DNA from: Chlorokybus atmophyticus
Lineage: Eukaryota > Plantae > Mesostigma and Chlorokybus algae
Length of the DNA: 64,000 bases
NCBI GenBank assembly: GCA_009103225.1
Contig: RHPI01002615.1
Location: forward strand, 132,328-196,327
Direction: 5' to 3'
Below, one piece after another: positions 35,604 to 58,613 of the stretch. The first letter of the stretch is position 1; each line of letters begins with the position of its first letter. The notes beneath the pieces were generated by a model, which searched no databases, was not told where the DNA came from, and worked only from the letters and a program-made list of their open reading frames with translations. Position numbers and translations under genes: made by a program.

Positions 35604-36139
35604 TGTCACAGCCCACTCGACCACAAAAGACTTGGTGCTTTTATGGTCGATTTGTGGTAATTTAATGTGCCTTCCCGTTACATTCCCCCCCACTTAAGAA
35701 CGCTGACGTCCTCGGCAGCTGGCGCTCTCATCAGCTGGGGAATTTTCTTCCCAGGGGTCTGATAGGGTCGGTCACCGGCCCCACAGCCAAGGACCGGCCA
35801 ATTTAGGCCCATACCGGTCAACGCGCGCATAGCGCGCCGCTACCGGCCCCATAGGTCGCATCGCCGCGATAGGCAGGTCGCGCCCTGCCGCGCCGACCGA
35901 ACTGGTCAGTTCGGCCCGACTGCCATTAAGCAAGTCGCGACCCAACGATGATGGTACTTATAAAGTGACCATTTACGATGTTATTGGATCGAGAAACAAC
36001 GACCGCGGAATTCGTGTGCAAGGCAGGAATCGAACCCGGGTCTCAAGCTCCGATGACCAATGTCACAGCCCACTCGACCACAAAAAACTTGGTGCTTTTA
36101 TGGTCGAGTTGTGGTAATTTAATGTGCCTTCCCGTTACA
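35604..36139 (-). mobile_element. TRIM (miniature LTR element) nested in the 5' leader of the gypsy element
   Basis: 79-bp LTRs at 35604-35682 and 36061-36139 (TGT...ACA, 2 mismatches) and a perfect 5-bp TSD GAGGC. On the minus strand there is a PBS-like TGGTCATCGGAGC and a PPT GTGGGGGGGAA. No coding capacity. Confidence 0.93.
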
Positions 36140-36762
36140 GAGGCGGCCACTCAGGCAGCCTCACCTCAAGTATTGCATCCCAGCACATCACTTGTAACTT
36201 TAATCACATATTACTTGTGATTGTGCTCGTGGGGCTGCCACCACGTGGATTCGTGGTGGTGTCAGGGAGGGTTGTGGTTGTTTACACTTCTCCCACCCCA
36301 AGAAAGCAGTCTTTGCCAACTTGGGCTGTTTTAGCCGCCGTTCGGTGCGGTAGGGCCGCCAGATTCATTCTGGGCGGCCGATATCAAACCCTCGACTCAC
36401 AACTTGTTGAGATCGGCCTGTAGGGCTGATTCAACGAGAGTTTGGCACCTTTGGTGTCGTTTCACAATTGTGATTTGAGAAGGGTTGTACAAAGTGAAAG
36501 CTTTGAGTTGTTGTAGCTTGTGAACCGCCGCGTGGATTCGCGTGCGATTTGTTTACAAGCGAGTGTCTTGTTGAGAGGTGTTGGGTAGTCATTTTACGGG
36601 CTGTTTAACCCAAGTATAGCACCTTGAAATCAACGAAAGAGAAATAACAAATTTTGACACTTTCAGAGTGCACAACTCGTGTGCTTGTGCACTCGTGCAG
36701 TTGCAAACTTCTTAACGGCTTGTCTCCTTGGGCAGATATCTCACCAACGAGAGGAAGGAGGG

Positions 36763-38180
36763 ATGTATCCCGTACCTGAGGATTTATCCTATGAGCCATC
36801 AAGTGATGAGGAAGTGAAGCACTCAGACACGAGTGGTGGTTACAGTGTCAGTGAGGAGGAAGAAGCCAAGTCCAAGAGTGGTGAAGCTTCTTCAAAGAAG
36901 TCCTCTCATGATGACCAACCTATGGACGCTCAGAGCATCATCGGGGCGGCCATAGCGAAGTACGCATCAGAGCGTGAAGCTCTTCTTGCTGCACACCCCA
37001 GCTTCGCAAGGAAGTGTGCGATGAGTGGGCGCAGCAAATCCGTAACGCATATGAGACGGACTTCACGGCACTCCCGCGCACAAGCAAGGAGATGGTGATT
37101 CGCATGATTCAGCATGAGTTGACGCGTAATGTACCGCAACTTATACGCACAGATCCGGCAGTGGCCACTCTTATGGCAATTTATGACAAACCAGGCCCGT
37201 ATCCAGGCCGGAGAATGGCGTTCGAGGCTCTCACCTTATTGACGGTGGAAATTCAGAAGCATTGCAAGGACCTTTTCTGGTACTTAGGGCCTGAGCTAGA
37301 GGAGATGTTAGCTCGAGAAGAGCGCTTGACTGCACGCCTCGATGCTATGCAGTCCGAGTTGGTGGCATTACGCCAGCAGGTGGCAGGGGCTACTACTACT
37401 GTAGCAGGGACATCAGTTGGCCTACCCGTCACAGCGCTGAACAAGCACGAGAAGTTCAAGCCTTATGGGGCTGTGAACATTCATGATTGGGTGGTGAATG
37501 TAAAGCGCTACTCGGCTGCACTTCAGCGACCAGTTAGTGAGCATGCATCTGTTGCTGAGTTGCTCATGCCACCTGACGCTTTGGCCAAGTGGGCGCGTCA
37601 AACGGAGGATGGTGCTTCCAAGACTGTGGAGGCATCATTTCAGTTCTTGGTAGAGCGCTATGGTGGCATGGACCCGGCTACTGCTGCTCGCAACAAGCTT
37701 ACCAAGCTGCGACAGAGTGGTCGGGCGGCTTCAGTGTACTTGCATGAGTTTCAGGCATTGGTTGGCCGTGTTAACACTGGGCTCATGCCCATGGACAAGG
37801 CTGAGCATCTTGACATGTACAAGCGCGGCTTGGATGCACGCTTGCGCGACCAGCTGCAGTACAACACGTCGACGGGGCAACAGTGGGTTCCCGCGGACCT
37901 CGCAACCTTGCAGAGGTTGAGTGTGTATCTGATCAATGACGATGCTGCGGCTGTGCAGGACAAGTCACAGGTGGTGGCTTCAGTCAAGCCACATGGGGGA
38001 GGGGGGAAGCGGTTCCCTCCACCAAGTGCGCATGCGGCGAAAATGGCCAAAACCTCATACGCACCTGCGAGTGGTGCTACGCCTATTGCAGCACGCGCCT
38101 GCTACGTGTGCCATCAGCCAGGTTACATCGCGAAGAACTGCCTAACCAAGGGAAAGGGCAAGGCCAAGAAGGTTGAATAG
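36763..38180 (+). pseudogene. gag: Retrotransposon gag with one frameshift near 37.05 kb
   Basis: Retrotrans_gag-like segment (LTKLRQSG..SVYLHEF) and a degenerate zinc knuckle CYVCHQPGYIAKNC. Confidence 0.88.
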
Positions 38181-38189
38181 GATTACGTC

Positions 38190-41100
38190 GTGACTAATGT
38201 ACCTTCATCTAGTGGCCAGTTGCTAGTGTTACATGCAGCAAACTGGTTTGATGAATTGTCTCGTGTACATGTAATGACACATGCATGGCAAGCACATGAT
38301 AAGCTGCCACTTTTTGATAGTGAAAAAGTGGATGACCAGGCTTGTGTGCTAGTGCATGTAGAATTTATGCTAACAGAAGTTTTGCGCACATTGTGTGAGT
38401 TACAAAATAAACACACGACACTGAGTGTGGTTGTCATGGTGCCGAAGTATCATGGACCGTGGCTAAAGCATACTCGGGGGGAAACTATGATGAAACAATT
38501 CACAAAGCGTGTGACGGGGACAGTGCGGTTGTCAGCAATATTGATTAACCCGCGAATAAGTCACGGAATCTTGGCTACTTTTCAAGGGCGAGTAGTGCCT
38601 TTATTGTGGACCTTCACATGCACGGCACAGAGTATAAGCTCATTCTTGGTTGACACCGGGGCAACGCATAACGTTGAAGAAAACTGGGTTATGCGCAATA
38701 AGATAGCGTGTAAACCCTCAACCTTCTCAGCTGCTGGTGCTGGGGGTACGTTATCGGTAAAAGGTGAAATCAAGTTGAAAGTTTTAAGATTGGTAGTTAT
38801 CAAGCCAACTTAACTTTCATCATAGTACTCATTGACATAGTTGGTGTTGATGTGGTATTTGGCCAAGAATGGCAGAATCAAGTGTCTGTGACATTAGATA
38901 CTGATGCACGGCTGTGCACAGTTAAAAAGGGGCATAAGCGCATCACTTTGTCCGTGCAGGGGTCGCATAGCTTGAAATACAAGCAAACAAACCCTGCGTT
39001 ACTTACGGCAATTCAAGTGAAGCGTGCGTTACGTAAAAACACACCTGCTTTTCTCAAGCAATTAACGTCGAGTGATGATGTTATGCCTGGCAATACAGAA
39101 GGTGTGGCGGACATCATTGAGAAATTTCAGGATGTGTTCTCAGATGAGTTGCCGGGCTTGCCCCCTGATCGAGGTGTCGGACACACAGTACCTTTAATTC
39201 CCAATAGTGAGCCTCTATTTCGGCCTATATATAGGTTGAGCCCTCGTGAGAGGGGGGAAATGGAAACACAGATAAAAGAGTTATTGGAAAAGGGGTTGAT
39301 TGAACCAAGTTCTTCACCCTTTGGCGCACCCATATTGTTTGTTATGGAAAAGAATGGGAAGTTGCGCATGTGTGTGGGTTACCGTGCTCTAAACAAGATC
39401 ACGATAAAGAACAGATACCCGTTGCCAAGGATTGATGATGTGTTTAAGTTGTCAGGGAATGCGTACTTTAGTACGCTAGACTGACAAGCGGCTATCATCA
39501 AATCTGGATTCATCCTTCGGATGTGTATAAGACAGCATTTAGGACACCTACAGGCCATTATCAATACAAAGTGTTACCTTTTGGATTGACCAATGCACCC
39601 GCTGTGTTTCAAAAGGAAATGAATAAAATTTTCGGTGACATGCTTGGTCAACATGTCATGATATACTTGGATGACATCATTGTCTTCAGTAAAACAAAGG
39701 AAGAACATAGGCAAAACTTGGAAGCGGTGTTTGCAAAATTGCGCAAGCATCGTTTGTTGGTAAATCTCACCAAGTGTGATTTTTGTAAAAGAGAGTTGCC
39801 CTTTCTTGGTCACATTGTTAGTGGTGTGGGTATCAAACCTGACCCTCGCAAAGTGCAGATTGTGAAAGAGTGGCCCCAACCTCAGAATATCCATCAACTA
39901 AGGTCGTTTCTAGGGTTGGCAAACTATTTGCGCAAGTTCATGATGGGGTACTTGACAGTTGTCATGCCTTTAACCAAACTGTTGCGTGAAGATGCCCCGT
40001 TCACTTGGACAATAGCACAAGAAACTGCTATGCAAAAGGTGAAGTTGGCTTTAACATCGGCGCCGGTGTTAGCACTGCCCAATTGAGACAAACACTTCAC
40101 AGTGGTCAGTAACGCATCAACACTTGGGTGTGGTGCAGTACTATTGCAAGATGGTAGACCTTATGCTTATAAAAGTAGGAAGTTCATTCCTGCAGAGGTG
40201 AACTACCTTACGACAGAGCAAGAACTATTGGGTATAGTTCATGCTCTCGAGACATGGCGATGTTACTTAGAGGGTGTTCAGTTCACTGTTGTGACTGATC
40301 ACAACCCGTTGGTGTATTTCTAAACACAGCAAAACTTGTCGAGACGGCAAGCGCGCTGGAATGAGATTTTGTTCAGGTTCACCTTTGATTGGGTGTATCG
40401 GCCGGGCGGAACCAATGTGGCTGACCCTTTGAGTCACTGCCCGTCATTACTGGCGGTGATGCGCGCGCAATACTCGCGACACGCAGCACATTGTCTCCCG
40501 ATGATGAGTTTGTGCAAATTGTTGTACAGGGGTACACTTTAAACCCGTGGTTTTTTAAAGACAACTTACAAAAATTTGACAACCGTGACAATCTGTATTA
40601 CATGAGCAACAGTTTGGCGATCCTTGATCATGCTGAACTGCGTGTAAAATGCATAGCGATGTACACGATCCACCTTACGCTGGGCACTTTAGTAGTTGCA
40701 AGACCACTAAGGCAGCGCAACAGTTGTATTAATGGCCATCGTTGCCTGCTGATGTGAAGCGGTATGTGGACACGTGTGACAAATGTCAACGTGACAAACC
40801 GTTATGTCAAAAGCCCGCTGTGCTACTGCGGCCGTTACCAGTTCCTGACAGTAAGTGGGAAAGTGTGAGTATGGACCTTATCACTGAGCTCCCTGAGACA
40901 GTGTTGGGTCATACTGCGGTTGCAGTGCTTATGGATCGATTGACCAAAATGGTTTACATTGTTCCTTGCCGTACGTAGATAGGCTCCCGTGACCTATCAA
41001 TGGTTTTTGTCGCATCAGTGTTCGAGTTGCATGGCTTGCCTCGCCACATTGTCTCTGACCGTGACCCGAGGTTTGTGGCTCAGTTCTGAAAGTCGCTATG

Positions 41101-41934
41101 CAACTTCCAGCAGATACAGCAGCACATGAGTACCGCTTATCATCCGCAGACTGATGGTCAGACTGAACGCGCCAATCAAGTGATTGAGGAAACCATTCGG
41201 CATTATGTGAGTCCGAATCAGTCTGATTGGGACATTATCCTGCAATGGCTGAGTTCGCGATTAACAATGCATGGCAAGAGAGTTTGCAGGAAACTCCGTT
41301 CTTCTTAAATTACGGAGTGCATCCACAAAGTCCTGCGAGTGGTAAGTTGCTAGCTAACGACTTGACTCGCGTGCCTGCAGCGCGCGAGATGGCTGCGGCC
41401 ATGCAAGACAGGTTAGCATTGGGAAAGAGCTGTCTGCGCGCAGCGCAAGACAGACAGAAAGCCCAAGCTGATAAGCATCGTAGGCAGGCCGACTATGATG
41501 TGGGCAATTCGGTGCTTTTGAGCACTAAACACATATCCATCAAGAGAGTGGGTACCCAAAAAATTTTCCCTTGCTGGATAGGCCCCTTCAAAGTGGTTGA
41601 TCGGGTCGGCACTCACGCGTATCGTTTGAAGTTACCACATTCCATACGTATACATAATGTGTTTCATGTGAGTGTACTGTAACCGTACCGTTCAGACGGT
41701 CGGGTTCAACCTCCTCCACCCCCAGTCGCAGTGGATGGCGATGATACTTTCGAGTATGAGGTGGAAACAATCTTGAGTCGCCGTAAGCCCCGACGCGGAC
41801 GCGCGCTGACTTACTTGGTGAAATGGAAAGGGTATGGTGTTGAACACAACACATGGGAACCCGAAAAGAATCTTACCAACTGCCATTGGATTCTGCGGGC
41901 GTACTTGAGTGATGTGTCCGCACGCAGACGGTAA
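38190..41934 (+). pseudogene. pol: Retrotransposon pol (PR-RT-RH-IN-chromodomain), disrupted
   Basis: [61 protein letters not shown] and YLVKWKGY motifs, with multiple in-frame stops. Confidence 0.95.
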
Positions 41935-42682
41935 AAGGGTGCTGGCAAACATCTTTACCGCTTCGGCCCTGATTCCTTTCTCACTTTGGTTTTCAGTGCT
42001 CACGGTGGGGCCTTGCTAACCCTTTAATGAAGACATTGAGACATACGTGGGGGGGAATGTAAGGGAGTGCTACCGCTATGCGGTTCCCCGCCCTTATTTA
42101 ATGGAAAATAAGGGTCCCAACGGGACAAACATAGCCATTAAAGTCGTATTAGGGCCTTTACAGGCCCTAATAAGGTGTTATGTTATGTAACACCGATATC
42201 GACTTGAGACATGAGTGTCAAGTCGATATTGGCCGCATGGCGGCGCTGCTAACGCAGCGACCGCCATAGCCAGGGGATCTTTCGATCCCATGGCTGCCAG
42301 AGGCGGCGGCGGCGACGTGGCTGTGGTTGGTGGTGGTGGGGTAGGGGATTAAAGGGGGCGATAGCACCTCCCCCTTCTTACAACATACCTCGTTTGTCTC
42401 CATCCGGACTCAAACCCAGGCTTGCGGCATACAAGTGATGCACCTTGTCGGCTGCACCATGCGGTTACTTGTGTCGCAGCTGGTGAATGAGGTCAACTGT
42501 AAAGTTATTTTGCGATCAGGTCGCGCCTTTGCTTCGCTGAGCCGTGCAGCAAATGGTGCGACCTATCTGCCGCCAATTGACCGAGGCTATCTCGGTCAGT
42601 TGAAGCAAAAGGTGCGCGATTTTACTGCGGCCAACTGACCGGAGGGGTTGGGACCAGGATGCCCGTTTCAGAGGGCGCGCTA

Positions 42683-43107
42683 CAGTCTAACCTCGATAAG
42701 TGCATACCATCGAGAACGGGCTTATGTATGCACTTATCGCGTTTATGCATCCTCGTTAAGTGCATAAATTATGCATCCGTTTTACGTGCATATATTATGC
42801 ACTTAGGCTTGGCATAAATGCATAATCTATGCACTTATTCAGTAAACCTAATCCTGAGTTACGTTGTAACGTATACGATCGTAACTCTAATACAGCGTAA
42901 TCGTAATTTGTCTGTAACTCAAGCGTAATGTAACTTGATTAGTGCATAGACACACCAAAGGTTAGGCATCTCATAGTATGCACTTATCAATAAGTGCATA
43001 TGCTCTTAACGCACAGATCTTCCCCCTGAAGACGTCGGTAATGGCCGAAATTATGCACTAAACGCGGATATGCACTAATCAAATATGCACTTATCGAGGT
43101 TAGACTG
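42683..43107. mobile_element. pogo/Tc1-mariner-type MITE
   Basis: 24-bp perfect TIRs (CAGTCTAACCTCGATAAGTGCATA), TA target duplication at 42681-42682 and 43108-43109, and internal repeats of TATGCACTTA. Confidence 0.92.
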
Positions 43108-43275
43108 TACTTGGTACAAATTGTCGTAGCAAGCGCGGTTCGCAGTCGTGGACGCCTGCATCGGCGGCATTTTGCAGTGTAGGCTGGTCGCAGCTTAGTA
43201 ACCGGCCATACTAAGAATAAACCATGGTGCGGACTTCCGCGGCCATATATCCGCGCCAAGCATGGCGCATATATA

Positions 43276-43457
43276 TCTCATTGGACCAGGTTTTCGGCGC
43301 GGCCTCCATGGCGCGGCCGGTAGTCACTACGGTACGGTACTAGGCTTGGTTCGGTTCGGCGGCCTCTATGGCGCGAATCTCATAGGACCAGGTTTTCGGC
43401 GCGGCTTCCATGGCGCGGCCGGTAGTCACTACGGTACGGTACCAGGCCTGGTTCGGT
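43276..43457. repeat. About 102-bp GC-rich tandem duplication
   Basis: TCTCA(T/A)(T/A)GGACCAGGTTTTCGGCGCGG...GGTAGTCACTACGGTACGGTAC occurs twice with period 102. Confidence 0.85.
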
Positions 43458-45619
43458 ATTGTGGAACCCCCTATTGCAAAACGGCTTTCCGCCGTCACGG
43501 TGTTTTTAGGCATCACGTCACCCTCGCTGACACATATCACATCGCAGCGCGTGAAGTGCTTTGAGTGCGCGTGAAGGGTGCATTCATTCATAGCTTGCGA
43601 CAGGTTTTCCAATCATAAATGACAACAACCGTATTACTTAAGTAATAAAAATTGTGTTATTGTTGAATACAACAATCATCATCACAATGAAGTCAAAGCA
43701 AAATGCATTGTGCGTATCTTGTTATATGGAGGTTTTGCTCACGTTTTATTCATAAAGTCTGTGGTAAAATTTTGGTAATGAGTCAATTGATCATAAATGT
43801 AAAGCGGTTTTGTAGGTGAACATGCATAAAAACCTCAAGCATCATCGACAACTAGCATATTATGGTGTATATGTATCATATTAACTACAATATGATGCTG
43901 TAATCAAATGGTATGCGTATGGGATTCACATCATCTGGATATCATATATTGTTGTACAATTATGTGATAATAAACATATTATTGTACACATACAAGGCAT
44001 CACACAAAAGTTACATTTGCACACTTGTGCCTTTTAATTCAAGCAAGTTTGCAACACACTGTTGCAAACTGTACATTATCAGATCACGCATGCCACATCG
44101 AAGTCTAATCAAAGCAATACCATTTTACTTCCATTGTAAATCATAATCAGCAGTGCAAAGTTATAAAGTTATTATTATGCACGAGTATACAATGTGATAG
44201 CTTTTACATTCATGCTGGTGTTTCTGTTGAACAAATTGCACAGGCTGCGTAGTGGCACTAACACGTGTTGTAAACGCATTCAAGAACAACAGGCTCAACT
44301 TCAACATGCAATTTTTTAAATTAATGAAAAGCATGCAAACTCAAAACGCATGTTACGTCATAATGTGGCGTTTTTAACTCACATTTTGATAGATTAAACC
44401 CAAAGTGTGGCTCTTTAAGGGGCTATACATAAATTAACGATGATATACAGCCACTTTCGAAGCAAATAAGCACAACAGAGACACTGGAGGGATTCGTGGC
44501 TCCAAAAATGCAAAATCAATAAGCTTAAGACTTTCTTACCGTGACATCTTTTACAATGTATTTATTGCAAACATGTTGAAATAGCTTTTATGGCTTTCAT
44601 TATAACCTTGTGTTACACAAGCAATTATGCCATCCTTCATGGTCACTCATAATTGCAACTCTGAAACGCAGATACCAGGTATCTCAGCCTTGGTATGGAC
44701 ATCATCATTTTAACAACCGTCATTGATGGATCTATCAGACATGTCTCATGGGAATGCAAGAAACGGGTTCTTCGTTAAGCGCACGTCATGCCGCCTACAT
44801 GAATACCAACAGCAAACATTCTTACAGCAATGGCAGACTGTGACACTCGCTCATGCCACCGTGTCCGAGGCACGCGGCGCGACATCAAGCAGTCCGCAAG
44901 CAGTCCGCTGCATGCAAGCTGTCGAGGCGTAGGCGCAGGCGGCGGCGGGGGCGGGAAAATAGAGGAGCTGTATTGAGGCTATCGACGTAGCCTTCTTGCT
45001 TGTGAACATGCATAGCAGTGAGTAGCTGTTTGGTTGCAGTAAATGAAAGCGTTTGGGCGAAGGCACTCGAGGCAGCAGTGCTTTGACCATCGCTGTCAAG
45101 GCTCAGGCTTCAAGCATGTAGCTTCAACCTCTGGTCTACGTGGAGGCAGCTGGCTTGCTGAAGCTTTGTAAGGGTAAGCAAATGTGGCTCTGTCTCACGT
45201 GCCAAAAAGTCAGATCCATATAGGTAAGAGGGCCTCTTAACGTGGTTGCTGCGCGACAGTTACACGACCATTTCTATGACAGTCGCAAGCCTTCGCAGTA
45301 GGCATGCTTGCTGATGCCACAGCACCAATGACTCAGCACATACACTCCACGATTCAACATGCTTCCAAGTCAGTCTCTGGCACACATACATGTGCCTGGA
45401 TACAACTGCTGGCGCTGTAGAAGTCAAGTGCTTTCCACACAGGACAAAGCGCACATGACCTTGTGTCTCGTGTTTGCAACAATGGCAGGCATGAACCTTG
45501 CTGGAACGTTGATAAGTATCCCACAAGTCCAGTGAGATGTCGGGCTGGAAATACTGCACAAATCGCACACGAATCAGCACATCAAGCTGCACACTGTCAT
45601 CGTTACTGGAACTCCATGC

Positions 45620-45669
<50 letters not shown>

Positions 45670-45854
45670 CGCTCGCTCGCTCGCTCGCTCGGGGGGTGGG
45701 TGGGTGGGTGGGTGGGCACTGGGTGCAGTGTTCTGCAGCCACTGCTAGGTGGTCTTCAGAAGTCAGGAACGTGATACCACGTTCCTGACTTCTAAAGTAC
45801 CCGGTCCTAACAACTGTCTCTTCACTGTGCAGTTCCACTAGCTTGCGGTCTGTC

Positions 45855-47183
45855 ATGGAAGCTGAGTACAGCGTGGACGCAGTGTCTGCTGCCAGCCATA
45901 ATGTGTTCTCAAGACAATGGCCCACGCCTCGCAGTGACAATGTTTTTGAGGCTCCAGCTTCAATGCCTTCCTGCGAGCGCTCCGAGAAAGGTAAATCCAT
46001 GGCATGGAGTATGCCCAAAGGAGGAGGCACGGGGACTTGGAGGCGTAGCCCACGTGCCACTGAGCCCCAACGTTGCCCACCGATCAAGCACGAACACGAG
46101 TGCGCTTGCTGCGGCATAAGTTTCATCAACCCTCTTAAAGATGAGCGCACAGATGCGCTATGTGGTGAATTTTCCATGCACGGTGGGTGAATAGACGCTC
46201 TTGTTTTGTCCCGCGTGCTGCATTGTTGCATACTTAAGGTCGTTTTGACATTGTTGGCAGGTTTGCCACGAGCAATGCGCATCGACACCAGCAAGCTGAG
46301 GCGTTTTCTCTGGCTGATGATCTTCTTAGGTGGTCTCGCGGCATTCATTGCATTGGTGGTGATCCAGATCCAGAGCTACAACGACTACAACACCATGAAA
46401 ACCGTCAACATTGTCGATGCATCCAAGCAGGGCGGCCTCTATTTTCCAGCGGTATGTTTGCTTACGGCACCGTGCAGGATGTCTTTAAATGCATCACGGA
46501 CTATGCACGATAGCAATGCTGACTGTGATGACGGCTACGCAGGTTACCATTTGGAATGTAAACACTGTTAGGTAAGCCTGTTTACCATCAAGCAATGGTT
46601 GCGTGCGCATGGCAGCTGTCCAATAGTAGTTTCCTCGAATTGCAATTGACTGTCCGACTGTAACAGCAATGTACATTGCCAATCAGGAAGTCTGCCGTGG
46701 TCAATACGCCTTACTTTGATGAGGTCTGTGGCGACGCCGCTGGTCTTGAGGGAGATGAGAATGAGGGCTTTCAGCGGTATCCTCTCAACTGGACAGACGA
46801 AGACATTGTAACCTCTGCGCATCAGCTTGAGAGGTTAGTTGAGAGCGCACTGGTGGCATGACTGTGCTACACAATGAACCGAGGTATGTTGGTTAGGCGA
46901 CTGGTTGTGTAACCACTTGAAGTGACACACAGCGCTGTCAAGCGCTGTCTTAAGCTGGCCTGCCTTTCTCATGCATTGCTTATGTCAGTGGATTAGCCAC
47001 CAGTACTCTTCACACGCGTCGCCACAACGCACGAGCCGGAGCAGCGCCTCAACCGCATCGAGTGCAGAGCGCAGCATTCAGGCACTGTCACTCTGGTTGG
47101 GATCAGCAACAGCAATGACGACAACAGAAGCAGTAGCAGCCAGGGTGATGAGGGCAGGGGAGAGGATGTACCATTTGTACTAG
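45855..47183 (+). pseudogene. DEG/ENaC channel paralogue 1, internally deleted
   Basis: Exons 45855-46182, 46261-46451, 46543-46571 and 46687-46833 encode EFSMHG, TM1 and FPAVTIWN. Sequence homologous to the C-terminal tail of paralogue 2 then resumes at about 46975. Exons 5-11 and TM2 are absent. Confidence 0.82.
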
Positions 47184-47227
47184 GTTGCAGAGGCTCTCGT
47201 ACACCCGCGCGCGCGCGGTAGGGGGGG

Positions 47228-47483
47228 TTGGCACCTTTGGTGTCGTTTCACAATTGTGATTTGAGAAGGGTTGTACAAAGTGAAAGCTTTGAGTTGTTGT
47301 AGCTTGTGAACCGCCGCGTGGATTCGCGTGCGATTTGTTTACAAGCGAGTGTCTTGTTGAGAGGTGTTGGGTAGTCATTTTACGGGCTGTTTAACCCAAG
47401 TATAGCACCTTGAAATCAACGAAAGAGAAATAACAAATTTTGACACTTTCAGAGTGCACAACTCGTGTGCTTGTGCACTCGTG
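47228..47483 (+). repeat. 256-bp exact copy of the gypsy 5' leader (36442-36697), ending at a single N
   Basis: Base-for-base identity by eye, followed directly by N at 47484. Confidence 0.9.
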
Positions 47484-47484
47484 N

Positions 47485-47862
47485 ACTCCCCAATGAAACT
47501 GCATGGTGTTGCGCAGACCGTCAACGCTTCTCTATAGTATGCACAACACATCAAGGGTGTGCACCCTTACTTTTGAGGTCTCAAGCGCTCACTTCTACAT
47601 ATGTCCCTGCCGACATTGCCCTAGGTATTGCAGCCACATGGTCAAGGTAGCCTACCTTGAGGTAGCGGTTTTCGACCGCGCATGTACCATCATGGTGCAT
47701 GCGCGGCCGAAACTGCTACCTCTCCTGCGCCTTATCATAAGGCGTGACCTGGCGGCGTGACGCTGGATGTGATGCTGCCGCGTTGTGTGATGTGCGTGAT
47801 GCGTGTGTATAAAAGAAGGAATGCAACTTTCGTGCATGCAAGGTCACACATGCCGTGTTCAC
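47485..47862. mobile_element. Possible partial LTR (serial hairpins, TATAAAA, ends TGTTCACA)
   Basis: Adjacent stem-loops such as AAGGGTG/CACCCTT, TCAAGGTAG/CTACCTTGA and CGCCTTAT/ATAAGGCG. No partner LTR is visible. Confidence 0.4.
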
Positions 47863-50633
47863 ATGCAAACTCGCTACACTTACCAATCACACAACCAAAC
47901 ACAACCACAGGGCTGGTCAATAACCATTTCGTTGTTTTACCTATTGCTTACCTACCTACTAACCATCCCCGTTAGTCGTGCATGGACGCTCATAGTCGGT
48001 TGGTTACCTGCAAGCATGTGCAGCAAGTTAGTCTTCACGGTCTTCACAGCAGCAAGTACCAAGAGCAGCAGACGGACTCCCACTCTCCTGTTCTCCTTCA
48101 ACCCGTCACTTCCGCCGCCTTCCCTGGCAGTCCCACATCATGATGTAACCCTCGCACAGGGCCCCTCTGCCCTGCCCCTCAGCCCTCCCCACGCAGCGAC
48201 TGTCGTGTACGACAGTCGCGGGTGCTGTGCTGCAAGTGCTGTCGGTGCTGGCAGTTGGGTGCTGCCGGTGGGGTTGGGTGGTGGGGTTGGTGCGGCGACG
48301 TTCTTGGCACGGGCATGCTGTGCTACCTCACAGCAGCATGCTCCCCGTGCAGGCGATGCAGTTGTGATGTCACCAGCGTTCGTCGCTGCCTCCTCAGCTC
48401 CATCAACACCAGCTTGTAGAGCAAAGGTGGCGGCGTGCAGTATATGTGTGTGCGCGCGCATGACCGTGTGATGTAGAGTAGCACGGCACACATAACCATG
48501 TACATATGTATATAGGTGTACTTATGATAAGGCAAATTACTTGTTTAGCGCAACCGCACTGAACGTAGACTGCCATCAGTGGTAAAGGCCAAGTGCACTT
48601 GGGTAGTGCAACGACATTTACAACAGAGTAAAGCATTGAACTATTGCAAGCTTACAAAAGCCCCTTTATCATGTATGCGCTAGGTGCTTGGTTGGCAGCA
48701 ATGTAGTTTGCAACAATTGTCAATGTAGTAAAGGTGAAGCTTGACGTTTGGATGAATGCAAATGACGTTTAAAAAAGGAACATCCAATAATATGCGACAT
48801 TTCAACTTGAGGGGTTGACGGTAAGCTTGATTTGAAAAGTTCTTTCAGTATAGCATTTAAACAATTGGTGTAAGCCTTGCATAAACATTTATTGAAATAT
48901 GTACATCTTAAGTTAAGTTGAGATGCTTAACATGTTGGTCATGCAATGGCTGAAGATCGTCCTTCATGGAGTATCATCAATAAATTTTGCATTAGCACTA
49001 ACATTTACACGAAAACAAAACCCCCTCAACTCATCTCAAGCTAAAAGGGCGCCCCCTTGAAACCGGCTTTAAACCCTCCCCCCCACCCCCCACCCCCACC
49101 TCTTGTGAGCGGGGTGTGTGGGTAGAGTGCCACTTCCGGAAAGTAAGTGCAATTCCGGCCTTTTGCGTTATTATTAGCACAACGTGTTTACCTAGCGTAA
49201 CTCATATGGCGAATGCATGTGACCACATGTGATTCAAGGTTGCATTTTTCCGAGCTTGTCTGAAGTTTGAAAAATGCATGTTGAAATTAAGATAAGCCCT
49301 TTATGCCTTGCTGAAAATTACATATCGAAAACCATGCATGCTTGCATCTTTTATATATATGCGCGTATACATGATGTATACACACACAAACCACCACACA
49401 CAACACTAGTAAAAGCACACATATAACACATCACATGATCAGCTGTACGGGTGTGGTTTATACCGATAAGGTAGTGCACATGAACACATCCTTCGTAGGC
49501 CTATCGAGGGTAATAACGAGAATATTAGCGCAATATAGATTTAGTAAAATGAAAGTTTGTTACACGGAGGCAACGACCCACAATGCCATGCAAACGGCTG
49601 ATGCTACATGCTAGCTTCACATGTCAACCCAGCACACACGAAAGGTATTGCACGAAAGTCCGGGACATCATGGTCCCGCAGACTTTGAAGGACACCATGA
49701 GGTCCACCATTGGGCATTCCAATAAGAGACATTCCTACAGCGCGGGCAAGCGCCACTGGACACTGCAACCGGCGCTGCATGCAGCAGTGGCGGGGGCGGC
49801 GGCGGCGGGAGGTGCTGCGTGGGAGCTGTCGTTGTGGCTTGTTGCTTACAGGCATGCATGCTGATCGGTAGCTGCTTGAGCTCGCTGGAGTTGGCGCAAG
49901 TTGCTGGGCGGAGGCAGCTGAGGAAGCGTTGACTTGACCATTGTGTGGTAAGGCTCAGCCGACAAGCATGTAGCCCCTAGACCAGCTAGAGCTGCAGCTG
50001 GCTTGATGAAACACTCCGGTGCATACAGGTGAGATAGCGGAAAGCCTGGATGTGTCACTGTGTGCTGATAGCAAGGGTCACATCCCATCGCCTGTGGTTA
50101 GTCATGACGCTTGCAGCGCCCCTTCATGGCAATCGCAAGCCTGGCTTGCATTTGCCAGCTATAGAGTTGCAGCATTAACACAGCAGATTACACTTCTCAA
50201 GAAGCTTCATGGTTGTCGTACGCTCAAGGAGCTTCTGGAGCCAGCTTGCGTTGTGTGTGCTGTGCGCTGTAACTGCACTTGCAGTCACATCACCATTCGC
50301 CACAAGCATAGTCTTGCTTCTTCTATTGCCTCTGGAGCACAGTGCTGATTGTAGCTTGCCTTGTACACGGGCAGAATTCTGTCGTTGAGCTGTTTCGATC
50401 GGTTTGCATGCCATACTGCAGCCGGGCGCCTGAACTGTTCAGTGTGCTGCTGACCTCCAGCACACTAGTAGTTTCACAGGTCTATAAAGCCCACACAATC
50501 TTTCGGTTTCATGTGTGAACCAGTGATGGGGGATTCCGTAAGGGAGCAGAGTTCTTGCAAGCACCACACTCACTAGATCTCATTATCATGTTCAAGCAGT
50601 ACCTCTCTGTGCAGTAGTCCTGTCTTGCCCTCT

Positions 50634-53600
50634 ATGATGGAGGCGGAGCACAGCAACGGCGCAGTGTCTGTTAGCCACAAGATGTCCTCATGGCAAGCTG
50701 CGAGACAACGTGCCTCACTTGACAATGGCCATGCGCTTGATGCCCCAGCTTCCATGCCTCCCTTCGAGCGTTCCACGAATGGTGAATCCACGCAATGGAG
50801 CGAGTCCAAAGGAGGAGGCGAGGGGACCGTCCAGACTTGGCCCAAGTCACTGAGGCTTCCACCTCGATTGGCTGTTGAGCCAGAGCCGTTTTTGCCCGTT
50901 AAACGCGAGCATGAGTGTTTTTGCTGCGGCACGAGCATAATCAACCCTCTTCAAGATAAGCGCACCGACGAGCTCTGTGGCGAATTCTCCATGCACGGTG
51001 TGGGCGCCAGAGGGCATGTGTGCGCGTGTGCGTATGCGTGCTTGTGCGCGCACTCTTGCATGCATGCGTGCCTGCCTGCTTGTGTGCCTCCCTGTCCCAA
51101 GTGCTGCAACTTTACTCACCCACAGTGGATTTGGTTGTTGGTTGCAGGTTTGCCGCGCGCAATGCGCATTGAGACCAGCAAGTTGAGGCGTTTTGTCTGG
51201 CTGATAGTATTCTTGGGTGGTCTCGTGGCATTCATCTCGTTGGTGGTGATCCAGATTCAGGTCTACACTGATTACAACACCAACATGAATGTCAACATCA
51301 TGGATGCATCCCAGCAGGGAGGCCTCGATTTTCCCGCGGTGCGTCCTTTGCTCACTCAGCACAGCACTGACTGTTGTGCAAATGCACTGATGACTTAAAT
51401 ACGACTCCGACCCTTGTTTTGAATGTCTGCGCAGGTCACCATATAGAATGTCAACACTGTCAGGTATGCACTTGTACCAGTAAGCAGCTACCGCCAGTTC
51501 TCATCGTATGAGAACGGCTTTGTGCACATGTCTCAGTAGTATAGTTCTTCCGAGGGGTTGCAACTCTGTCCAATAGCTTCTTGCCATGCAGGAAGTCTGC
51601 TGTGGTCAACACGCCTTACTTTGACGAGGTCTGTGGAAACGCTGCTGGTCTTGAGGGAGACGAGCATGAGGGCTTTCAACGGTATCCTCTCAACTGGACA
51701 CAACCTGACATTTTGGCCACTGCACACCAGCTTGATAGGTTTGTTTGTTTTGTTGGGAGTGCACCCCCTTCACACATGCCTGTGCAGTACAACCACCCAG
51801 ACTCTTCCCCAGGCATGAGTTTTACTCCAGTGGGACATGCACCAATCTGTGGCCTTTGTTGAGCAGCATGCTGGTGGGCTGCCGCTTTAATAGAAGGAAT
51901 TGCACAGCGAGTGACTTTGTCACCAGCATTTCACCTTTCCCGTAAGTACCGGTGCTGACATTGCACAACACATTTAGCGTCTTTGCGTCACGATTGACAA
52001 GCAGCTTGGTTGGTGTTGTTTGCATCATTCCTGCTTGAATAGTCCGTAGCAAGAATATTTCAAACAAAGCATGGGCCTGCTTCTCATTGTGCTGAGGTAC
52101 AGAGACAACCGTTTTGGCGTCGCTTACACCTTCAACATCCTCAATGACTTAAGCACCTACACATCAGGCCCTGATGGCGGTTTATGGCTGGCCTTGAATG
52201 TTAACCAGGCAAGCATGGACTTGCCTGTTGTTGCTTTCTTAGCAAGTACTTGCTGTAGCTTGCATTGGCAAAGCTGGTCTTATGCAACTACTTGGTGTAA
52301 TAGGCGGAGTATTGCCCACGAACTTGGGGATCAGGGGTGTTCTTCGAGTTGCACAGCCACCGGGGGCTGCCACGTGATTTAGCAACTGAGCACATTTCGC
52401 CTGTCCGTCGGCAGGTGCTTGCATCTCAATGGCGTATGCTGCACTACCACAATCGAACAATGCTTGAGACTCATACACCTCTCATCAGATGCTAGCAAGC
52501 GGGAGGTGGTGGCAAGTGGGTATCACGCCAACATTTCAGTCCTTCCTGGGCCCTCCATACAGTAAGCACTGCTGATAATCTGTAACTAGCACGTGCAGTG
52601 AGATTCTGTTGTCTGTCGCAGGCCAACACGTGGCTGTTTGATTGCGTATCACATAAAGTTGATCATGTGCTTTAACTTAAGGTTGTGATCATCCTTTCAA
52701 GACGCACTGCCTGTTTTCGATAGTTCCGCGCTTTCGCACAGCACGTTTTGTCATATGTTGTCAAAGTGCTGCTGTTGAGCGCTCAGTAGGCCTGGCCTGT
52801 GCACTTGTACAGCAGCTTGCATGCATTGTTGCAAGTATGCTGGATGTCTCCTTACCACTGTTTGAGTCTTGTGCTAGTTTTGACTTGATCCTTTTTGCCG
52901 CAGATGACCCGTGCATCGATCCTTCCAAAGGACAGGTAGGGGCTAATCGATTTCTGTCATAAACTGTGTTAGCAGTCAGCTGGTGGTATCGCTTGTGACC
53001 GGTGAAACAGCAACATGTACTGTCACGGACAAGTGACCTACATGAGCTTATGTCCGCTACACCTTTGAGTTGATATGACATGCTCGCGGATCCATTGTCC
53101 TTGTCTGCTGCTAATCGACATTGCGTGGTGCACAGCAAATCCCTCGCAAGAACGTGTCCTTAGAGTGCGCGCTGGGGTGCGCAGGAGTAGAGACATATCC
53201 GGTGTCAACGTTGGCCAAGCTTAGTCGCACTGACTTCCTCGACCTGAGCAGTGACAAAGATTGCATCCTCAAGTGCTTCAACCTCACACAGTATCGGTAA
53301 GTCAATACACAACTGCGTGCTGCACACACCTACCAGGTGACAAGCGTAACCACCGATGCCTGCAGCGTCTTGTCATATGGTACAAACCGTATAACAAATC
53401 AACCGCTTCAGCCGTAGGCATATAGCAGCATAGCCACCTCGCAGTTGTCAACTGCCATGGTTGATATAGATATGCTGATAGCTGAAGTCTCTCTCAGGCT
53501 ATGTGCGCCAGTGGTCTTTGAGACCTACCTTGGATCAGTGGCCATCCCAACTGTCAACGCAGTGCCATCATTCATGCATCGCTTCCCCTCGTTGGCGATG

Positions 53601-54171
53601 GGTTACAACCCGGACAACATCACAGGTGACACCGCTGCTCTCCGGACAGTGAAGGGCAATCTGGAAGACAACCTGGTCATGCTGTCCTTCTACTACAAGG
53701 ATATCACCACCGTCACACAACAAGTCCAGGGCGCAGCGTACACAATAGGCGCACTGATCTCAAATGCAAGTGCATGTGTGTGTGCATGCAGCAGTCCACT
53801 GCCATGCGTGTGCGTGCGGCCATCTGCCTCAACACTTGTCAACATTTGTTATGTGTGTCAAGGTTGGAGGTTTGGCGGGTCTCTTTCTCGGTATGTCCGT
53901 CCTAAGCCTGTTTGAGGCTGCGGAGATACTGGCAGTGCTGTGTATGTTCTTCTGGCACGACTACAAGGTCAGGCGCTACGGGCCATTCATGTACCAAGAG
54001 CACCTCACGCCACGGGCTAGCTTAGAGTTGCGCAACCTCCACCCAAACAAGTCCTACCGAGCGCCTTATGACAAGTACCTACGCAACCAGCAGCCCTCAT
54101 CGCATGCGGCACCCAAACACACCAGCCGGACCAGCGTCTCCATTGAGCCAATCGCAGAGCACAATGTGTAG
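50634..54171 (+). CDS. DEG/ENaC (ASIC-like) channel paralogue 2, 12 exons, about 621 codons, with an in-frame TAG at 51444 (probable pseudogene)
   Basis: Exons 50634-50997, 51148-51338, 51435-51463, 51592-51738, 51867-51941, 52103-52208, 52304-52414, 52489-52561, 52904-52935, 53136-53296, 53498-53765 and 53863-54171 sum to 1866 nt. Motifs are HG, TM1, FPAVT, CRF..NC..SDF, GVAYTFN, GLWLAL, PPY, and YTIGALISNVGGLAGLFLGMSVLSLFE (TM2). Confidence 0.9.
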
Positions 54172-55353
54172 TTGCGGTTGTGACTTGGGTTGTCACAGCA
54201 ACAACGCCAGCAATAGCGCCAATGCCCGTGCCAAAAACAACTGCATTAGAAACCACAACAACAGTACGATTAGCAGCAGCAATGCGGGTGCCCTCCAGAA
54301 CTGGGAGCGAGTTGATTGTTCTCAATGGTGTTGCACAGATTCTGGGAAATGGAGTGTATACGCTGCACTTAGTACTTCAAGTGATCATATGTCCCTGGAG
54401 ACATGTTGCCCATGAGTTAATGCAAATGCACCTATGCTTGGGTTGAAGGCAGCAATGTTTGTCATCTTCCAGGTGAAAAGTTTAATGGCTTCAAGCTGGT
54501 TGATACTCTCTGCAACTTGCGATCAAGTATTGCAACGTGCTTGCTACTGTAGCACTGCTCAATTGCCTTCTTCAGCAGGCGCTAGGTCTGCATCGCCTGG
54601 GGCACGAAGGCACCGTGACAGCCTGTGCTGCAGGCAGATAGCCTGGCTGCCCGTGCTTGACAATTAGGTTTGAGACCCAGATAAACTGCATGAGAATGAC
54701 AATAACGTCTTACATGAAGGTGCATCTGAACCTCTGAAAACTATGATCAAACCATGTCAGTGTGTGAACACTGATCCTTGCCGTCAACATCTGCCAACAC
54801 ACCTACTCTAGAGTCATGACATAAAGTGTGACAGCGCGAGTTTTGCACACACCTGCGTTGCACGCTCCACTCGCATTATGGTAACATAATGTCAGAATCA
54901 TGCAGGAGGAGCACTGGACGCAATGTAGTGCTGTCATCGCGGGGGCCACCGCGGAAGCCATGCTGAAGTGGACATAATATAACCTCATCACGAGAGATCA
55001 GTGCTACGGTACTACGGAAGCATAGTACAACCAGTTGAAAAAGGTTTGGGGACCTGGGACACGTTCCATAGCTGACCTATGCAGCTAGCCATGTGGTGGC
55101 ACGTGAGCGGCCTGAGGGTTACCATCCCACTGTAGACTTCGATTGGTTGGCAACTGTGGCAAGTGCCACTAGCATATTGTACACATGCACAAAGCTGAAC
55201 AATGCGCAACAACGCTAGCTCACACAAACCCTAAGATGACGCCCACCTCCCCCCGCACGCCAAGCCTGTATGTACAACATGTGTGGCGGCTCTCACCACC
55301 ACGCATTACCACTGTGTGCCCGCTGTCGTGCACAAGCGCTTAGATCCATTGTA

Positions 55354-58300
55354 TCACACCGACAGTGCTCCATCTTCGTGAATGGACTGCGAGACGCTAG
55401 CCTTGCTTGCTTGCGAAGGAGCACTTGACCCGTCGCCATCAGCATGCAAGGGACGGCGTTGGTTACGTGTATGGAGGTACTTGTCGTAGGAGGCCCTGCG
55501 CGACGGGAAGGGCTGCAGGTTTCTCATCTCCGAGCTTGCCCGTGGCGTGAGGTGCGCCTGGTATCGGAGCGGCCCGCGACGGTTCAGCTGGTAGTCGTGC
55601 GAGTATATGAGACACAACAGGGCTAGTATCTCCGCCGCCTCCACAAGGGTCAGAACGGACATGCCCAGAAAGAGCCCTGTCAAACCACCAACCTGAAAGC
55701 ACAGGGTCGGTGAGTTGAGAAGCCACAAACACAGCTGTTGCATGCACACCCCACCAACGTACAGACCTATGTCCGAAAATGCACATACCCATGCGCGCAC
55801 GCACAGACACAGACACGCCCGCGCGCACGCGCGCACACACACATGTGGTGCATGACAGTCAGCCACTGACATTTGAGATCAGAGCGCCGATCGTGTACGC
55901 TTTGGTCTGGATCTGCTGGGTCACGGAGCTGATGTCTTTGTAGTAGAAGGATATCAGCACGAGGTTGTTGTGGAAATTGTTGATGACGCTCTGGAGGGCG
56001 ACGGGGTCGTCGGTGATGTTATCCGGGTTGTACCCGAGTGCCAGCGAGGGCCATCGGCGCATGAAAGCCGGCACCGCATTGATTGTTGGGATCTCTATTG
56101 ATCCAGTCTCCGTCTCAAACATTGTTGACGCACACAACCTGAGACACACCACACACAGCACTCGTGGTTGTGATTGTACAGTAGTTTGGGAGAGGCATCT
56201 CAATGCAGCAGCACAGAACTCTGCGCGCGCATGCGTGTCTGCATTTCAAGCAAATGCACTTACTGGTATAGTGTTAAGTTGAAGCAGTCAAGGATGCATT
56301 TACTATCGCTGCTGATAGACAGGAAGTCCTCGCGATTGAACTTGGCCAGCGCGTTGATTGGGTATGCGTCGACCCCGGGGCAACCCAAAGAGCACTCCAG
56401 CGACACGTTCTTGCGAGGAATGAGCTGCACACAACATGCCACGCCGCAAGTGAGTGCTGGCCAGCATAAGACTGTAGTAGCCATTGTTGACATTGCAGCC
56501 CAGCGCAGAGCACTTCTCAACCGTTGAGCGAGATTGGCATGTCGTCACAACATCATGCGCTGCATCATCCAAGCAGTGTGTACCTGTCCTTTGGAGAGGT
56601 CCACACAAGGCTCATCTGCAAGCAATGCGCGTATCAACAATAGTGGTTGAACTTGCTGAAACACAAAGGGCACTCACTATACGGAGGGCCAAGAAAGGAC
56701 TGATAGGTTGGGGTGATGCCCACTTGCCACCATCTCCCGTTTGCTAACATCTGTTGAAGCAACACGGTCAGCAGGCAATGAACAGCAGAAACAAGTGTGA
56801 CAAGTGTTGATAAAGCTTATGTACGCCACTTTTGGGTGTGCTATATGCTCGTACGCTATCAAGCATGCGTACGACATTGTATGGTGTGCTATGCCCTTCT
56901 CTTTGCATTTAAACCTGGCGGCTAGGAGGTGAAATGTGCTCGATGGCAAAGTCAACTGGCAGTCCTTGATGATCATGCAACTCAAAGAACATCCCTGAGC
57001 CCCAGGTTCGAGGGCAGTACTCTGCCTAGAAAACACGTGATGTTGTAAGTTGCAAGCCTGTCAACTCTTTGTGTGGGTAACACCTGATAACGAGCTTGCC
57101 TGATCGATGAACAAAGCCAACCACAAGCCTCCATCAGGGCCTGATATGTAGGTTGTCATGTTGCTGAAGATGTTGAATGTGTAAGCGACGCCAAAGCGGT
57201 TGTCTCTGCACAACAGACCAAAATAAGCAATGCTCCTGATGCGCAAGTATTGACGCATCGGCAATGTGTACAAGTTACAATACATAATCAGCAAAGAGGC
57301 TAGTCAGTTCCTGTTACAGAAGAAGGTGTGCTTACGGAAATGGCGATATACTGGTGTAGAAATCGCTTGCGGTGCAGTTTGTCCCATAAAAGCGGCAGCC
57401 CACCAGCATGCTGCGTAAACAATGGTGCTGCTATTGTGTGTAATGTCACACAGACCAAGCTATGAGAGTCACAAGATCGCTGGGCATTCACATCTTGCTG
57501 CGCTGTTGGGTGATTGTATAGGGTGGTGTGTCATGTGTGCGGGTTCTATGCTTATCAAATGCATGCACCAAGAAACCTGTCAAGCTGGTGTGCAGACGCC
57601 AGTACGTCCTCATCTGTCCAGTTGAGCGGGTAGCGTTGGAAGCCCTCGTTCATGTCTCCACTAAGACCAGCAGTTGTGCTGCAGACCTCATCATAGTCAG
57701 GCGTATCAACGACAGCAGACCTCCTGCATTGCAGACACTTGTAAGTTCTTCATTCTTAACGTAGCTTTCAGCCTATAACTACGCAGAACAAGCGCTTGAG
57801 AGTACACACGCATACACACCTGACGGTATTGACATTCCATATGGTGATCTGCTCAGCCATCAGCAGTACAGAGTCAGTACTGATGCAGCTGACCATAATG
57901 ATAGAATTCAGATGCGATGATGCGGCATACCGAAGGGAAGCGCAGGCCAACGCCATTTCTTGACATGTCGACGATGTTGATATTTATGTTGGTGTTGAAG
58001 TCGGCGTAAATCTGGATCTGGATGATACTCAAGGCTATAAAGGCGGCCACACCTCCGAGGAACACCAGCAGCCAGAGGAACCGCCTCGTCTTGCTTGTGT
58101 CAATGCGCATCGCACGTGGCAAACCTGTGATGAACAAATTAGTGCTGAACACAATCCAAAGCAAGACACGCACACATACTAGCATATGCAGACACGTGAT
58201 TGCGCACATGTGCTAAAGCGCGCGCATGCGCACACATCAGAGACCACAGACGCAGGTGCGCTTCAATCCATTCATGTGTCATGTCAAGTCGCCGACTCTC

Positions 58301-58613
58301 AGCACATACCATGCATGGAGAACTCGCTGCAGAGTTCGTCGGTACGCTCATCTTGGAGTGGGTTGATGCTTTTCGAGCCGCAGCACATGCACTCGTGTTG
58401 ATGTCGCTCCGGCGGGTTCGGCTCAGGCTCGATGCCCGGCCGCACATCCGGCATGCTCCAGTCAGCGGAGTCGCGCTCCCCACGCTCAAAGGGAGCCATC
58501 GCAGCCGGCGCTTCATGCTCGAAACCGGTGCGGCGAGGGGAAGTCCGCCTCACCGTTGAAGATGGAGACAAGACATGAGCAACGGACACGTCCCGACTGT
58601 ACTCGGGCTCCAT
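55354..58613 (-). CDS. DEG/ENaC (ASIC-like) channel paralogue 3, apparently intact, inverted relative to paralogue 2
   Basis: Same 12-exon layout on the minus strand, giving EFSMHG, FPSITIWNVN, FGVAYTFN, FLGPPY and YTIGALISNVGGLTGLFLGMSVLTLVE. I found no stop in the reconstructed exons. Confidence 0.9.

Follow-up and report, generated by a model that had tools for sequence, protein, structure and literature searches.

Layout of the cluster

[quoted passage not shown] Comparison of the window with itself, as DNA and in translation, resolves this coding sequence into three related units with short introns: unit 1 starts at 45855 on the forward strand, unit 2 occupies 50637-54171 on the same strand, and unit 3 runs from 58613 to 55354 on the reverse strand, units 1 and 2 lying head to tail and units 2 and 3 tail to tail. 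Pieces of six-frame open reading frames (ORFs) between 45.8 and 58.7 kb match the family profile Pfam ASC (PF00858) individually; the pieces with the first transmembrane segment (TM1) score 26.5-30.4 bits in all three units (cut-off 23.6), and those from the C-terminus 21-24 bits. An earlier note on this DNA had spoken of three DEG/ENaC genes; the three units are indeed present at these positions, but only the third (copy 3) is intact, copy 2 being interrupted by a TAG stop and copy 1 comprising exons 1-4 only. The cluster consists of a single working gene, a probable young pseudogene and a fragment, laid out as follows.

45855-46861, forward strand: copy 1, exons 1-4 only (45855-46182, 46261-46451, 46543-46571, 46687-46840)
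49905-50010, forward strand: upstream segment of copy 2, 106 nt, 70% identical to 45054-45162 upstream of copy 1 (blastn, window against itself)
50637-54171, forward strand: copy 2, 12 exons as in copy 3, 620 codons with one in-frame stop, 68% identical to copy 3
Copy 2, exons 1-6, forward strand: 50637-50997, 51148-51338, 51435-51463, 51592-51738, 51867-51941, 52103-52208
Copy 2, exons 7-12, forward strand: 52304-52414, 52489-52561, 52904-52935, 53136-53296, 53498-53765, 53863-54171
51444-51446, forward strand: TAG stop within exon 3 (29 nt) of copy 2, in place of the Trp codon of T-I-W-N, which is TGG in copies 1 and 3 (three-copy DNA alignment)
55354-58613, reverse strand: coding sequence of copy 3, 12 exons, 612 amino acids (aa), no stop, identical to protein P0002
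Copy 3, exons 1-6, reverse strand: 58613-58310, 58124-57931, 57848-57820, 57723-57577, 57410-57336, 57205-57100
Copy 3, exons 7-12, reverse strand: 57025-56915, 56750-56678, 56615-56584, 56424-56264, 56138-55871, 55692-55354

The splice sites of units 2 and 3 were picked by their shared position in both units and by preservation of the reading frame. Each of the two copies has 12 exons and 11 introns, of 62-342 nt, with GT-AG borders throughout, the exceptions being intron 6 in the two copies and intron 11 in copy 2, which are GC-AG; the 11 introns and approximately 620 residues proposed earlier are thus recovered, with 612 aa in copy 3, 620 codons in copy 2, and introns 7-11 confirmed by RNA. 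The donor of intron 6 reads GCAAGC in copy 2 (52209-52214) as well as in copy 3 (57094-57099), and this GC-AG intron has therefore been kept since the duplication; the donor of intron 11 is GCAAGT in copy 2 (53766-53771) and GTCAGT in copy 3. Since the segment at 49905-50010 matches the region upstream of copy 1, the tandem duplication unit took in the 5' flank, and the segment marks its 5' end.

Copy 3 is an intact, expressed gene

The spliced translation of copy 3 equals P0002 residue for residue (source name jgi/Chlat1/1069/Chrsp110S08634). Three parts of the gene carry its defining features.

57931-58124, reverse strand: exon 2, encoding the HG-motif Gly, TM1 and the first part of FPSITIWN; Pfam ASC positions 1-70, 26.5 bits for the piece alone
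55354-55692, reverse strand: exon 12, with the second transmembrane segment (TM2) and its GLFLGMS (G-x-S) filter, and the cytosolic tail with DKYL...RR; Pfam ASC positions 432-454, TM2 aligned to ASIC1a and FaNaC
54929-55353, reverse strand: 3' untranslated region, into which the RNA contigs of runs X1 and X2 extend unbroken from exon 12, as far as 54929/54930

Contigs assembled from RNA of this one organism in two studies (2013 and 2021) were aligned over 51100-57100. Exons 7-12 of copy 3 are covered by a 2404-nt contig (word depth 256) and by contigs from two other runs, and the joints in the RNA (55690|55869, 56136|56262, 56424|56584, 56615|56678 and 56750|56915) coincide with introns 7-11 of the model, with a 2-nt ambiguity. 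The transcript is 100% identical in the runs of both studies; copy 3 is intact, transcribed, and spliced as modelled.

Copy 3 belongs to the DEG/ENaC superfamily

Copy 3 scores 120 bits on Pfam ASC (E = 1.8e-34, in two stretches, cut-off 23.6) and its algal relatives 139-142 bits. In a phmmer search of the PDB, its best single-sequence match is FaNaC of Aplysia (E = 2.6e-19, 72.5 bits), with human ASIC1a at 5.2e-19; the TM1, beta-ball and TM2 regions are covered. A profile of six algal proteins covers human ASIC1a from residue 4 to residue 464 in one continuous alignment (141 bits, E = 4.5e-40); after ASIC1 it scores highest on ASIC2, then on FaNaC (111 bits), ASIC5 (92) and the gamma (81), beta (71) and alpha (68) subunits of ENaC. 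A core model of residues 86-545, obtained with AlphaFold2 from nine sequences, reaches a predicted local distance difference test (pLDDT) of 67.6 and a predicted template-modelling score (pTM) of 0.62. Searched with Foldseek against the PDB, it returns ASIC1, ASIC2, ASIC5 or FaNaC in all of the top 50 matches (E = 5e-22 to 5e-19, template-modelling (TM) scores 0.49-0.61), and against the clusters of the AlphaFold DB the named matches within the top 30 are nearly all of DEG/ENaC type. This model supersedes a first one (full length, six sequences, pLDDT 48), whose Foldseek matches were likewise all ASIC or FaNaC, at TM-scores <0.4. Membership in the superfamily, for which the earlier note had named Pfam ASC as a check, is secure: the profile score far above cut-off is joined by the end-to-end profile match to ASIC1a and by the ASIC fold recovered with Foldseek.

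The family motifs follow one another in copy 3 in the proposed order: FSMHG at residues 98-102, TM1 at approximately 114-142, FPSIT at 164, GCRFYGTNCTASDF at 229, GVAYTFN, GLWLAL at 276, PPY..C at 344, six thumb cysteines, and finally YTIGALISNVGGLTGLFLGMSVLTLVE; only the spacing given earlier as C-x-F-x3-C needs correction, as copy 3 has C-x-F-x4-C. The two membrane segments appear as hydropathy peaks at residues 123-133 and 505-523 and, in the AlphaFold2 model, as two long helices (residues 113-144 and 494-536 in full-length numbering). Every one of the six N-x-S/T sequons falls between the two hydrophobic segments, as do ten cysteines, in an ectodomain of approximately 350 aa, and by homology the N-terminus with the HG motif and the C-terminal tail would be cytosolic.

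The FSMHG of all three copies aligns to STLHG of ASIC1a; in TM2, VGGLTGLFLGMSVLTLVE of copy 3 aligns to IGGQMGLFIGASILTVLE of ASIC1a, and the middle residue of the filter is Met in copies 2 and 3, giving GMS. Ser499 of copy 3 corresponds to the DEG site. The cysteines that are kept comprise the beta-ball pair C230 and C237 (C-x6-C, followed by DF) and the thumb C-x3-C of C368 and C372. In every algal sequence, the Cys of T-x-C-N is replaced by Trp and the Cys of G-x-C-YTFN by Ala or Gly, and the thumb has six cysteines, compared to ten in ASIC1a.

Two further motifs lie in the cytosolic parts. All three copies have an N-terminal cysteine cluster, H-E-C-x-C-C-G (58391-58411 in copy 3), which neither the Chrsp290 paralogs described below nor Bryopsis possess; lipidation or metal binding could take place there. 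The C-terminal tail has a motif [DK]KY[LIT] followed by a basic cluster (55483-55503 in copy 3), which copies 2 and 3 have in common with Bryopsis and the Chrsp290 paralogs (P0003, P0007, P0005) and which may act in trafficking or regulation as a signal peculiar to the algal subfamily.

Relatives and origin of the algal subfamily

A profile of the N-terminal part of the three copies, which is too short for animal channels and reaches only fairly close relatives, was searched against 1.84 billion representative proteins and returned six: copies 1 and 3, the paralog P0003 on scaffold Chrsp290, two proteins of the chlorophyte Bryopsis sp. KO-2023 (GMH43961.1 and GMH44271.1, here P0005 and P0006, both hypothetical proteins), and one protein from a further sequencing run. 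Later searches added the paralogs Chlat1/4575 and 4576 and a protein from a second sequencing run; the two runs are SRR28002514 and SRR23272284. Word-indexed protein searches with copy 3, with the six-sequence alignment and with a Bryopsis protein gave 3-4 matches each, with no animal channels among them, though these score well by HMMER; scans of the IMG/VR and JGI metagenome contigs for the subfamily motifs found no relatives.

The Chlorokybus paralogs (Chlat1/4575, 4576, 4583) are 46-47% identical to copy 3, and Bryopsis P0005 is 35% identical to it. Like copy 3, these proteins have T-x-W-N, a G-x-x-YTFN free of Cys, YCP(R/E)xW, six thumb cysteines and GLFLG-x-S; unlike copy 3, their filter is GAS, as in Chlat1/4583, or GVS, and they have HA, or LA, in place of HG. 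A tree of nine algal sequences consists of two well-supported groups, one of Chlorokybus and one Bryopsis-like, with long branches between them; within Chlorokybus, the three copies of the cluster form one group and the Chrsp290 genes another. The Bryopsis gene (BSYQ01000011.1, L002:10001-11734) is a single intronless exon, compared to the 11 introns of the Chlorokybus genes. Its neighbor encodes a protein of 1504 aa with Peripla_BP_6 and a weak Pfam match to a TRP channel.

The DEG/ENaC family (ENaC, ASICs, degenerins and FaNaC) passes for an animal one, apart from a few protists. Outside the animals, Elkhatib et al. (2023, PMC10507113, where a dinoflagellate channelome paper is cited) list homologues only from Tunicaraptor unikontum, Cafeteria roenbergensis and Symbiodinium or dinoflagellates; the BLAST searches of that study included Chloroplastida, and the only candidates came from holozoans, a single alveolate and a single stramenopile. 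Aguilar-Camacho et al. (2023) describe the same non-animal distribution, and according to a plant paper DEG/ENaC is missing from land plants; in the figure of a review, homologues are attributed to choanoflagellates, in conflict with Elkhatib et al. (2023). The homologues of Tunicaraptor, Cafeteria and Symbiodinium resemble the algal genes in being functionally uncharacterised ASC-family members outside the animals, very patchily distributed, but differ from the green-algal copies in their hosts, which are a filasterean relative, a stramenopile and an alveolate, respectively. No paper on DEG/ENaC channels in green algae was found in the literature covered, which leaves out most subscription journals; together with the Chloroplastida searches of 2023, which yielded no candidates (PMC10507113), this bears out the view that the subfamily is undescribed. 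Two transcripts labelled 'Amiloride-sensitive sodium channel' in an Iso-Seq table of Dunaliella salina were not counted as a prior description; they are given there without comment, and contamination is possible, because one of them is also labelled EGF-like, a pair of domains otherwise seen, among the Atlas matches, only in a nematode cluster.

As to how the algae came by these genes, one possibility, though not one to be called probable, is that DEG/ENaC channels already existed in the last shared ancestor of the green plants, or before it, and that a few algae (Chlorokybus, Bryopsidales) have kept them as functional, differently gated Na+ channels. Another possibility, no more and no less likely, is that the algal genes were not inherited from the green-plant ancestor but were acquired horizontally, whether from an animal or a protist or from one alga to another. 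It is favored by the very patchy distribution, which among the 1.84 billion proteins of the profile search comprises only Chlorokybus, Bryopsis and one sequencing run, with a second run added by a later search, by the empty scans of IMG/VR and JGI metagenome contigs, and by the difference between the intronless Bryopsis gene and its 11-intron counterparts in Chlorokybus; lateral transfer has also been raised for other non-animal members (Elkhatib et al., 2023, PMC10507113). Against it, streptophyte and chlorophyte members share derived features, namely the Trp for Cys in T-x-W-N, the Cys-free G-x-x-YTFN and YCPRTWG, with long branches between them; these features fit either a Viridiplantae ancestor or one old transfer. 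The score difference between the two animal clades is only moderate (ASIC1 141, FaNaC 111, ENaC gamma 81 bits), and eleven spliceosomal introns together with old paralogs argue against a recent event.

If the ancient origin holds, the family is not an invention of animals or their close relatives, and a part of the plant lineage has an ENaC-type sodium conductance; if transfer took place, the presence of the genes in algae says little about the age of the family. In either case, the family is extended to the Archaeplastida, where it is expressed, intron-rich and multi-copy in an early-branching streptophyte alga and has relatives in a chlorophyte, so that its age beyond the animals can now be tested against lateral transfer. 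The gene models had been made public before, though without names, and drawing attention to them is where the value lies; what is found is a new lineage of a known family, with some distinctive features, which matters mainly for the origin of DEG/ENaC channels.

Fates of the duplicates

Copy 1 lacks the donor of intron 4, and its frame stays open as far as a stop at 46861; resemblance to copy 2 ceases at approximately 46840-46847, the border of exon 4 and intron 4, and a permissive tblastn search with the copy 3 protein found no further copy 1 exons up to 50600. It matches Pfam ASC at positions 2-89 only. Judged from its sequence, copy 1 is a 5' fragment that lacks TM2 and would be unable to form a pore. 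In its annotation it is a protein of 289 aa, P0001 (jgi/Chlat1/1068), which includes a further exon upstream, at approximately 45043-45171, and RNA run X1 contains 0.36 of the sampled words of 45000-47000, which fits a transcript of the truncated copy. Between the annotated upstream exon and the conserved ATG lies a (GA/CT)n microsatellite (45603-45719), in which an ORF reads RERERE or SLSLSL.

Just downstream of copy 1 there is one more feature.

47228-47484, strand not assigned: 256-nt repeat, 100% identical to 36442-36697 inside the upstream long terminal repeat (LTR) retrotransposon, ending exactly at a single N (47484)

The idea that the missing exons of copy 1 are hidden in this single-N gap was rejected, because the similarity to copy 2 ends at the border of exon 4 and intron 4, 640 nt before the N. 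The sequence beyond the N does not continue the retrotransposon, and the repeat is probably a fragment of a retroelement (or a collapsed copy) or an assembly gap.

Copy 2 is a probable young pseudogene, which a single change from TGG to TAG appears to have disabled. The four RNA runs give no contig cover specific to it, which is absence of evidence only, given that contigs drop rare transcripts; two short pieces of RNA that align to it (51864-51888 and 52103-52196) do so with 16 mismatches and are part of the copy 3 contig, and the word share of 0.20 over the whole stretch is that expected from the exons of copy 3 alone. A protein model of copy 2 was not returned by any of the protein searches, and copies 1 and 3 carry successive JGI numbers (1068 and 1069). 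In the tree of nine algal sequences, its branch (0.18) is not longer than those of copy 1 (0.22) and copy 3 (0.21), so that the stop is recent, bypassed or an error.

This last point belongs to an alternative that we consider unlikely, in which copy 2 is still functional, either because the TAG is an error of the assembly or particular to the strain, or because an acceptor 12 nt further downstream skips it, giving FPA|NVNTVR. The TAG is the sole defect in 620 codons, all 22 splice sites are canonical GT/GC-AG, the branch length does not exceed that of the sister copies, dN/dS (the ratio of non-synonymous to synonymous divergence) is as low as 0.17, and the AG of the TAG itself lies in frame as a candidate acceptor that would skip the 12 nt. 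Such a skip would, however, remove V-T-I-W from the conserved first strand after TM1; moreover, the runs that give copy 2 no contig of its own cover copy 3 deeply, the copy 3 exons account fully for the word share, and the JGI numbering leaves no model between 1068 and 1069.

Copies 2 and 3 differ with a dN/dS of 0.17 at a synonymous divergence (dS) of 1.3, which is near saturation, and with a dN/dS of 0.15 in the channel core; for copies 1 and 2 the values are 0.26 and 0.72. The duplicates are thus old and have long been under purifying selection, and the local expansion that had been proposed finds no support, as there is one intact copy and the duplicates are of that age (dS 0.72-1.3); the rates point to a history of gene birth and death. 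Overall, a small, old DEG/ENaC cluster shaped by birth and death, with copy 3 intact, copy 2 disabled and copy 1 a fragment, is the probable reading of the locus.

Proposed channel and points bearing on conduction

By homology, copy 3 most likely assembles as a trimer in the surface membrane, in which the TM2 helices and the loop with the HG motif before TM1 would line a voltage-independent cation pore with a preference for Na+. The pore would be opened by an extracellular cue, through a change in the cysteine-stabilised ectodomain; this cue is probably not protons sensed in the ASIC way.

Several points weigh against an intact channel beside a disabled duplicate. The structural model is a monomer of medium confidence; the filter of copy 3 is GMS instead of GAS or GSS; and one Cys pair conserved in animal channels is missing, while the thumb has six cysteines where ASIC1a has ten, so that gating, and even selectivity, could differ. 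For copy 2, the absence of RNA rests on assembled contigs, which lose rare transcripts, and the TAG is that of the assembled sequence.

The same differences in cysteine pattern and filter from characterised channels would fit a protein that has kept the DEG/ENaC fold but conducts no ions, for example a surface receptor or adhesion protein. We regard this as improbable: the elements of the pore are the best conserved across the algal subfamily, with the HG or HA motif before TM1 and with G502, G503, GLFLG, the Ser of G-x-S and E518 invariant.

Residence in the Chlorokybus genome

Upstream of the cluster lies a mobile element.

35000-43500, strand not assigned: LTR retrotransposon; gag-like ORF, 37014-38180; reverse transcriptase, 39523-40086 (Pfam RVT_1, 89.6 bits)
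35000-35292 and 42090-42382: its LTR pair, a direct repeat, 94% identical, which may begin before 35000

The notion that the genes stem from contaminating animal or protist DNA or from a chimeric contig, to which the overwhelmingly animal distribution of the family and the nematode ASC clusters found as language-model neighbors might lend color, can be dismissed with near certainty: copy 3 matches a JGI gene model of Chlorokybus exactly and has paralogs on a different scaffold, two studies of this one organism (2013 and 2021) gave RNA runs in which its transcript is 100% identical, a Chlorokybus LTR retrotransposon lies on the same contig, the nearest relatives are the Chlorokybus paralogs and Bryopsis (33-47% identity, compared to 17-20% to animal channels in Foldseek alignments), and the Bryopsis homologue sits on a 4.6-Mb nuclear contig. 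The genes are thus resident in this genome, as the earlier note had supposed from their introns; the spliced RNA, the paralogs, the green-algal relatives and the retrotransposon all agree with this. Elsewhere in the window, runs of N mark assembly gaps at 9073-9654 (582 bases) and 12658-12831 (174 bases).

Comparison with known channels

Among known channels, ASIC1a (PDB 7cfs, 2qts, 6ave) is the best profile match to the algal proteins, from before TM1 to the end of TM2, and has the same fold, with TM-scores up to 0.61, although the identity to ASIC1 structures in the Foldseek alignments is only 17-20%. ASIC1a and copy 3 have in common the HG motif, TM1, FPxxT after TM1, the beta-ball C-x6-C, YTFN, GL-x-L-x-L, PPY..C, the thumb C-x3-C and GGxxGLFxGxS..E. 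They differ in the filter, which is GAS in ASIC1a and GMS in copy 3, and in two cysteines: that of T-L-C-N in ASIC1a is Trp in copy 3 (Trp170), and that of G-K-C-YTFN is Ala (Ala257). In the structure of chicken ASIC1 these two residues form one disulfide; as both are absent, the change looks like a paired loss. The algal proteins, with one Cys pair absent, fewer thumb cysteines and GMS, are thus natural variants that should be useful for recognizing what is essential to gating and selectivity.

The position of His73 in ASIC1a is occupied by Thr in copy 3, as the H-H of FHYHHV pairs with N-T in the phmmer alignment, within a weakly aligned loop. His73 and Lys211 are present in all proton-sensitive ASICs aligned by Elkhatib et al. 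(2023, PMC10507113); since the key histidine is absent, proton gating of the ASIC type is improbable for copy 3, and its absence is compatible with pH sensitivity conferred by other residues. The label 'ASIC-like' or 'acid-sensing' is therefore fair as a statement of similarity, but goes too far where it would imply the ASIC subfamily or gating by protons.

FaNaC (PDB 7yvb/7yvc) shares the fold of copy 3 at TM-scores of 0.53-0.54; copy 3 shows no sign of the finger insertions that bind the peptide in FaNaC. The subunits of ENaC (6wth) carry PPxY in their C-terminal tails; copy 3, which lacks it, has instead the DKY[LI]...RR that it shares with its algal relatives.

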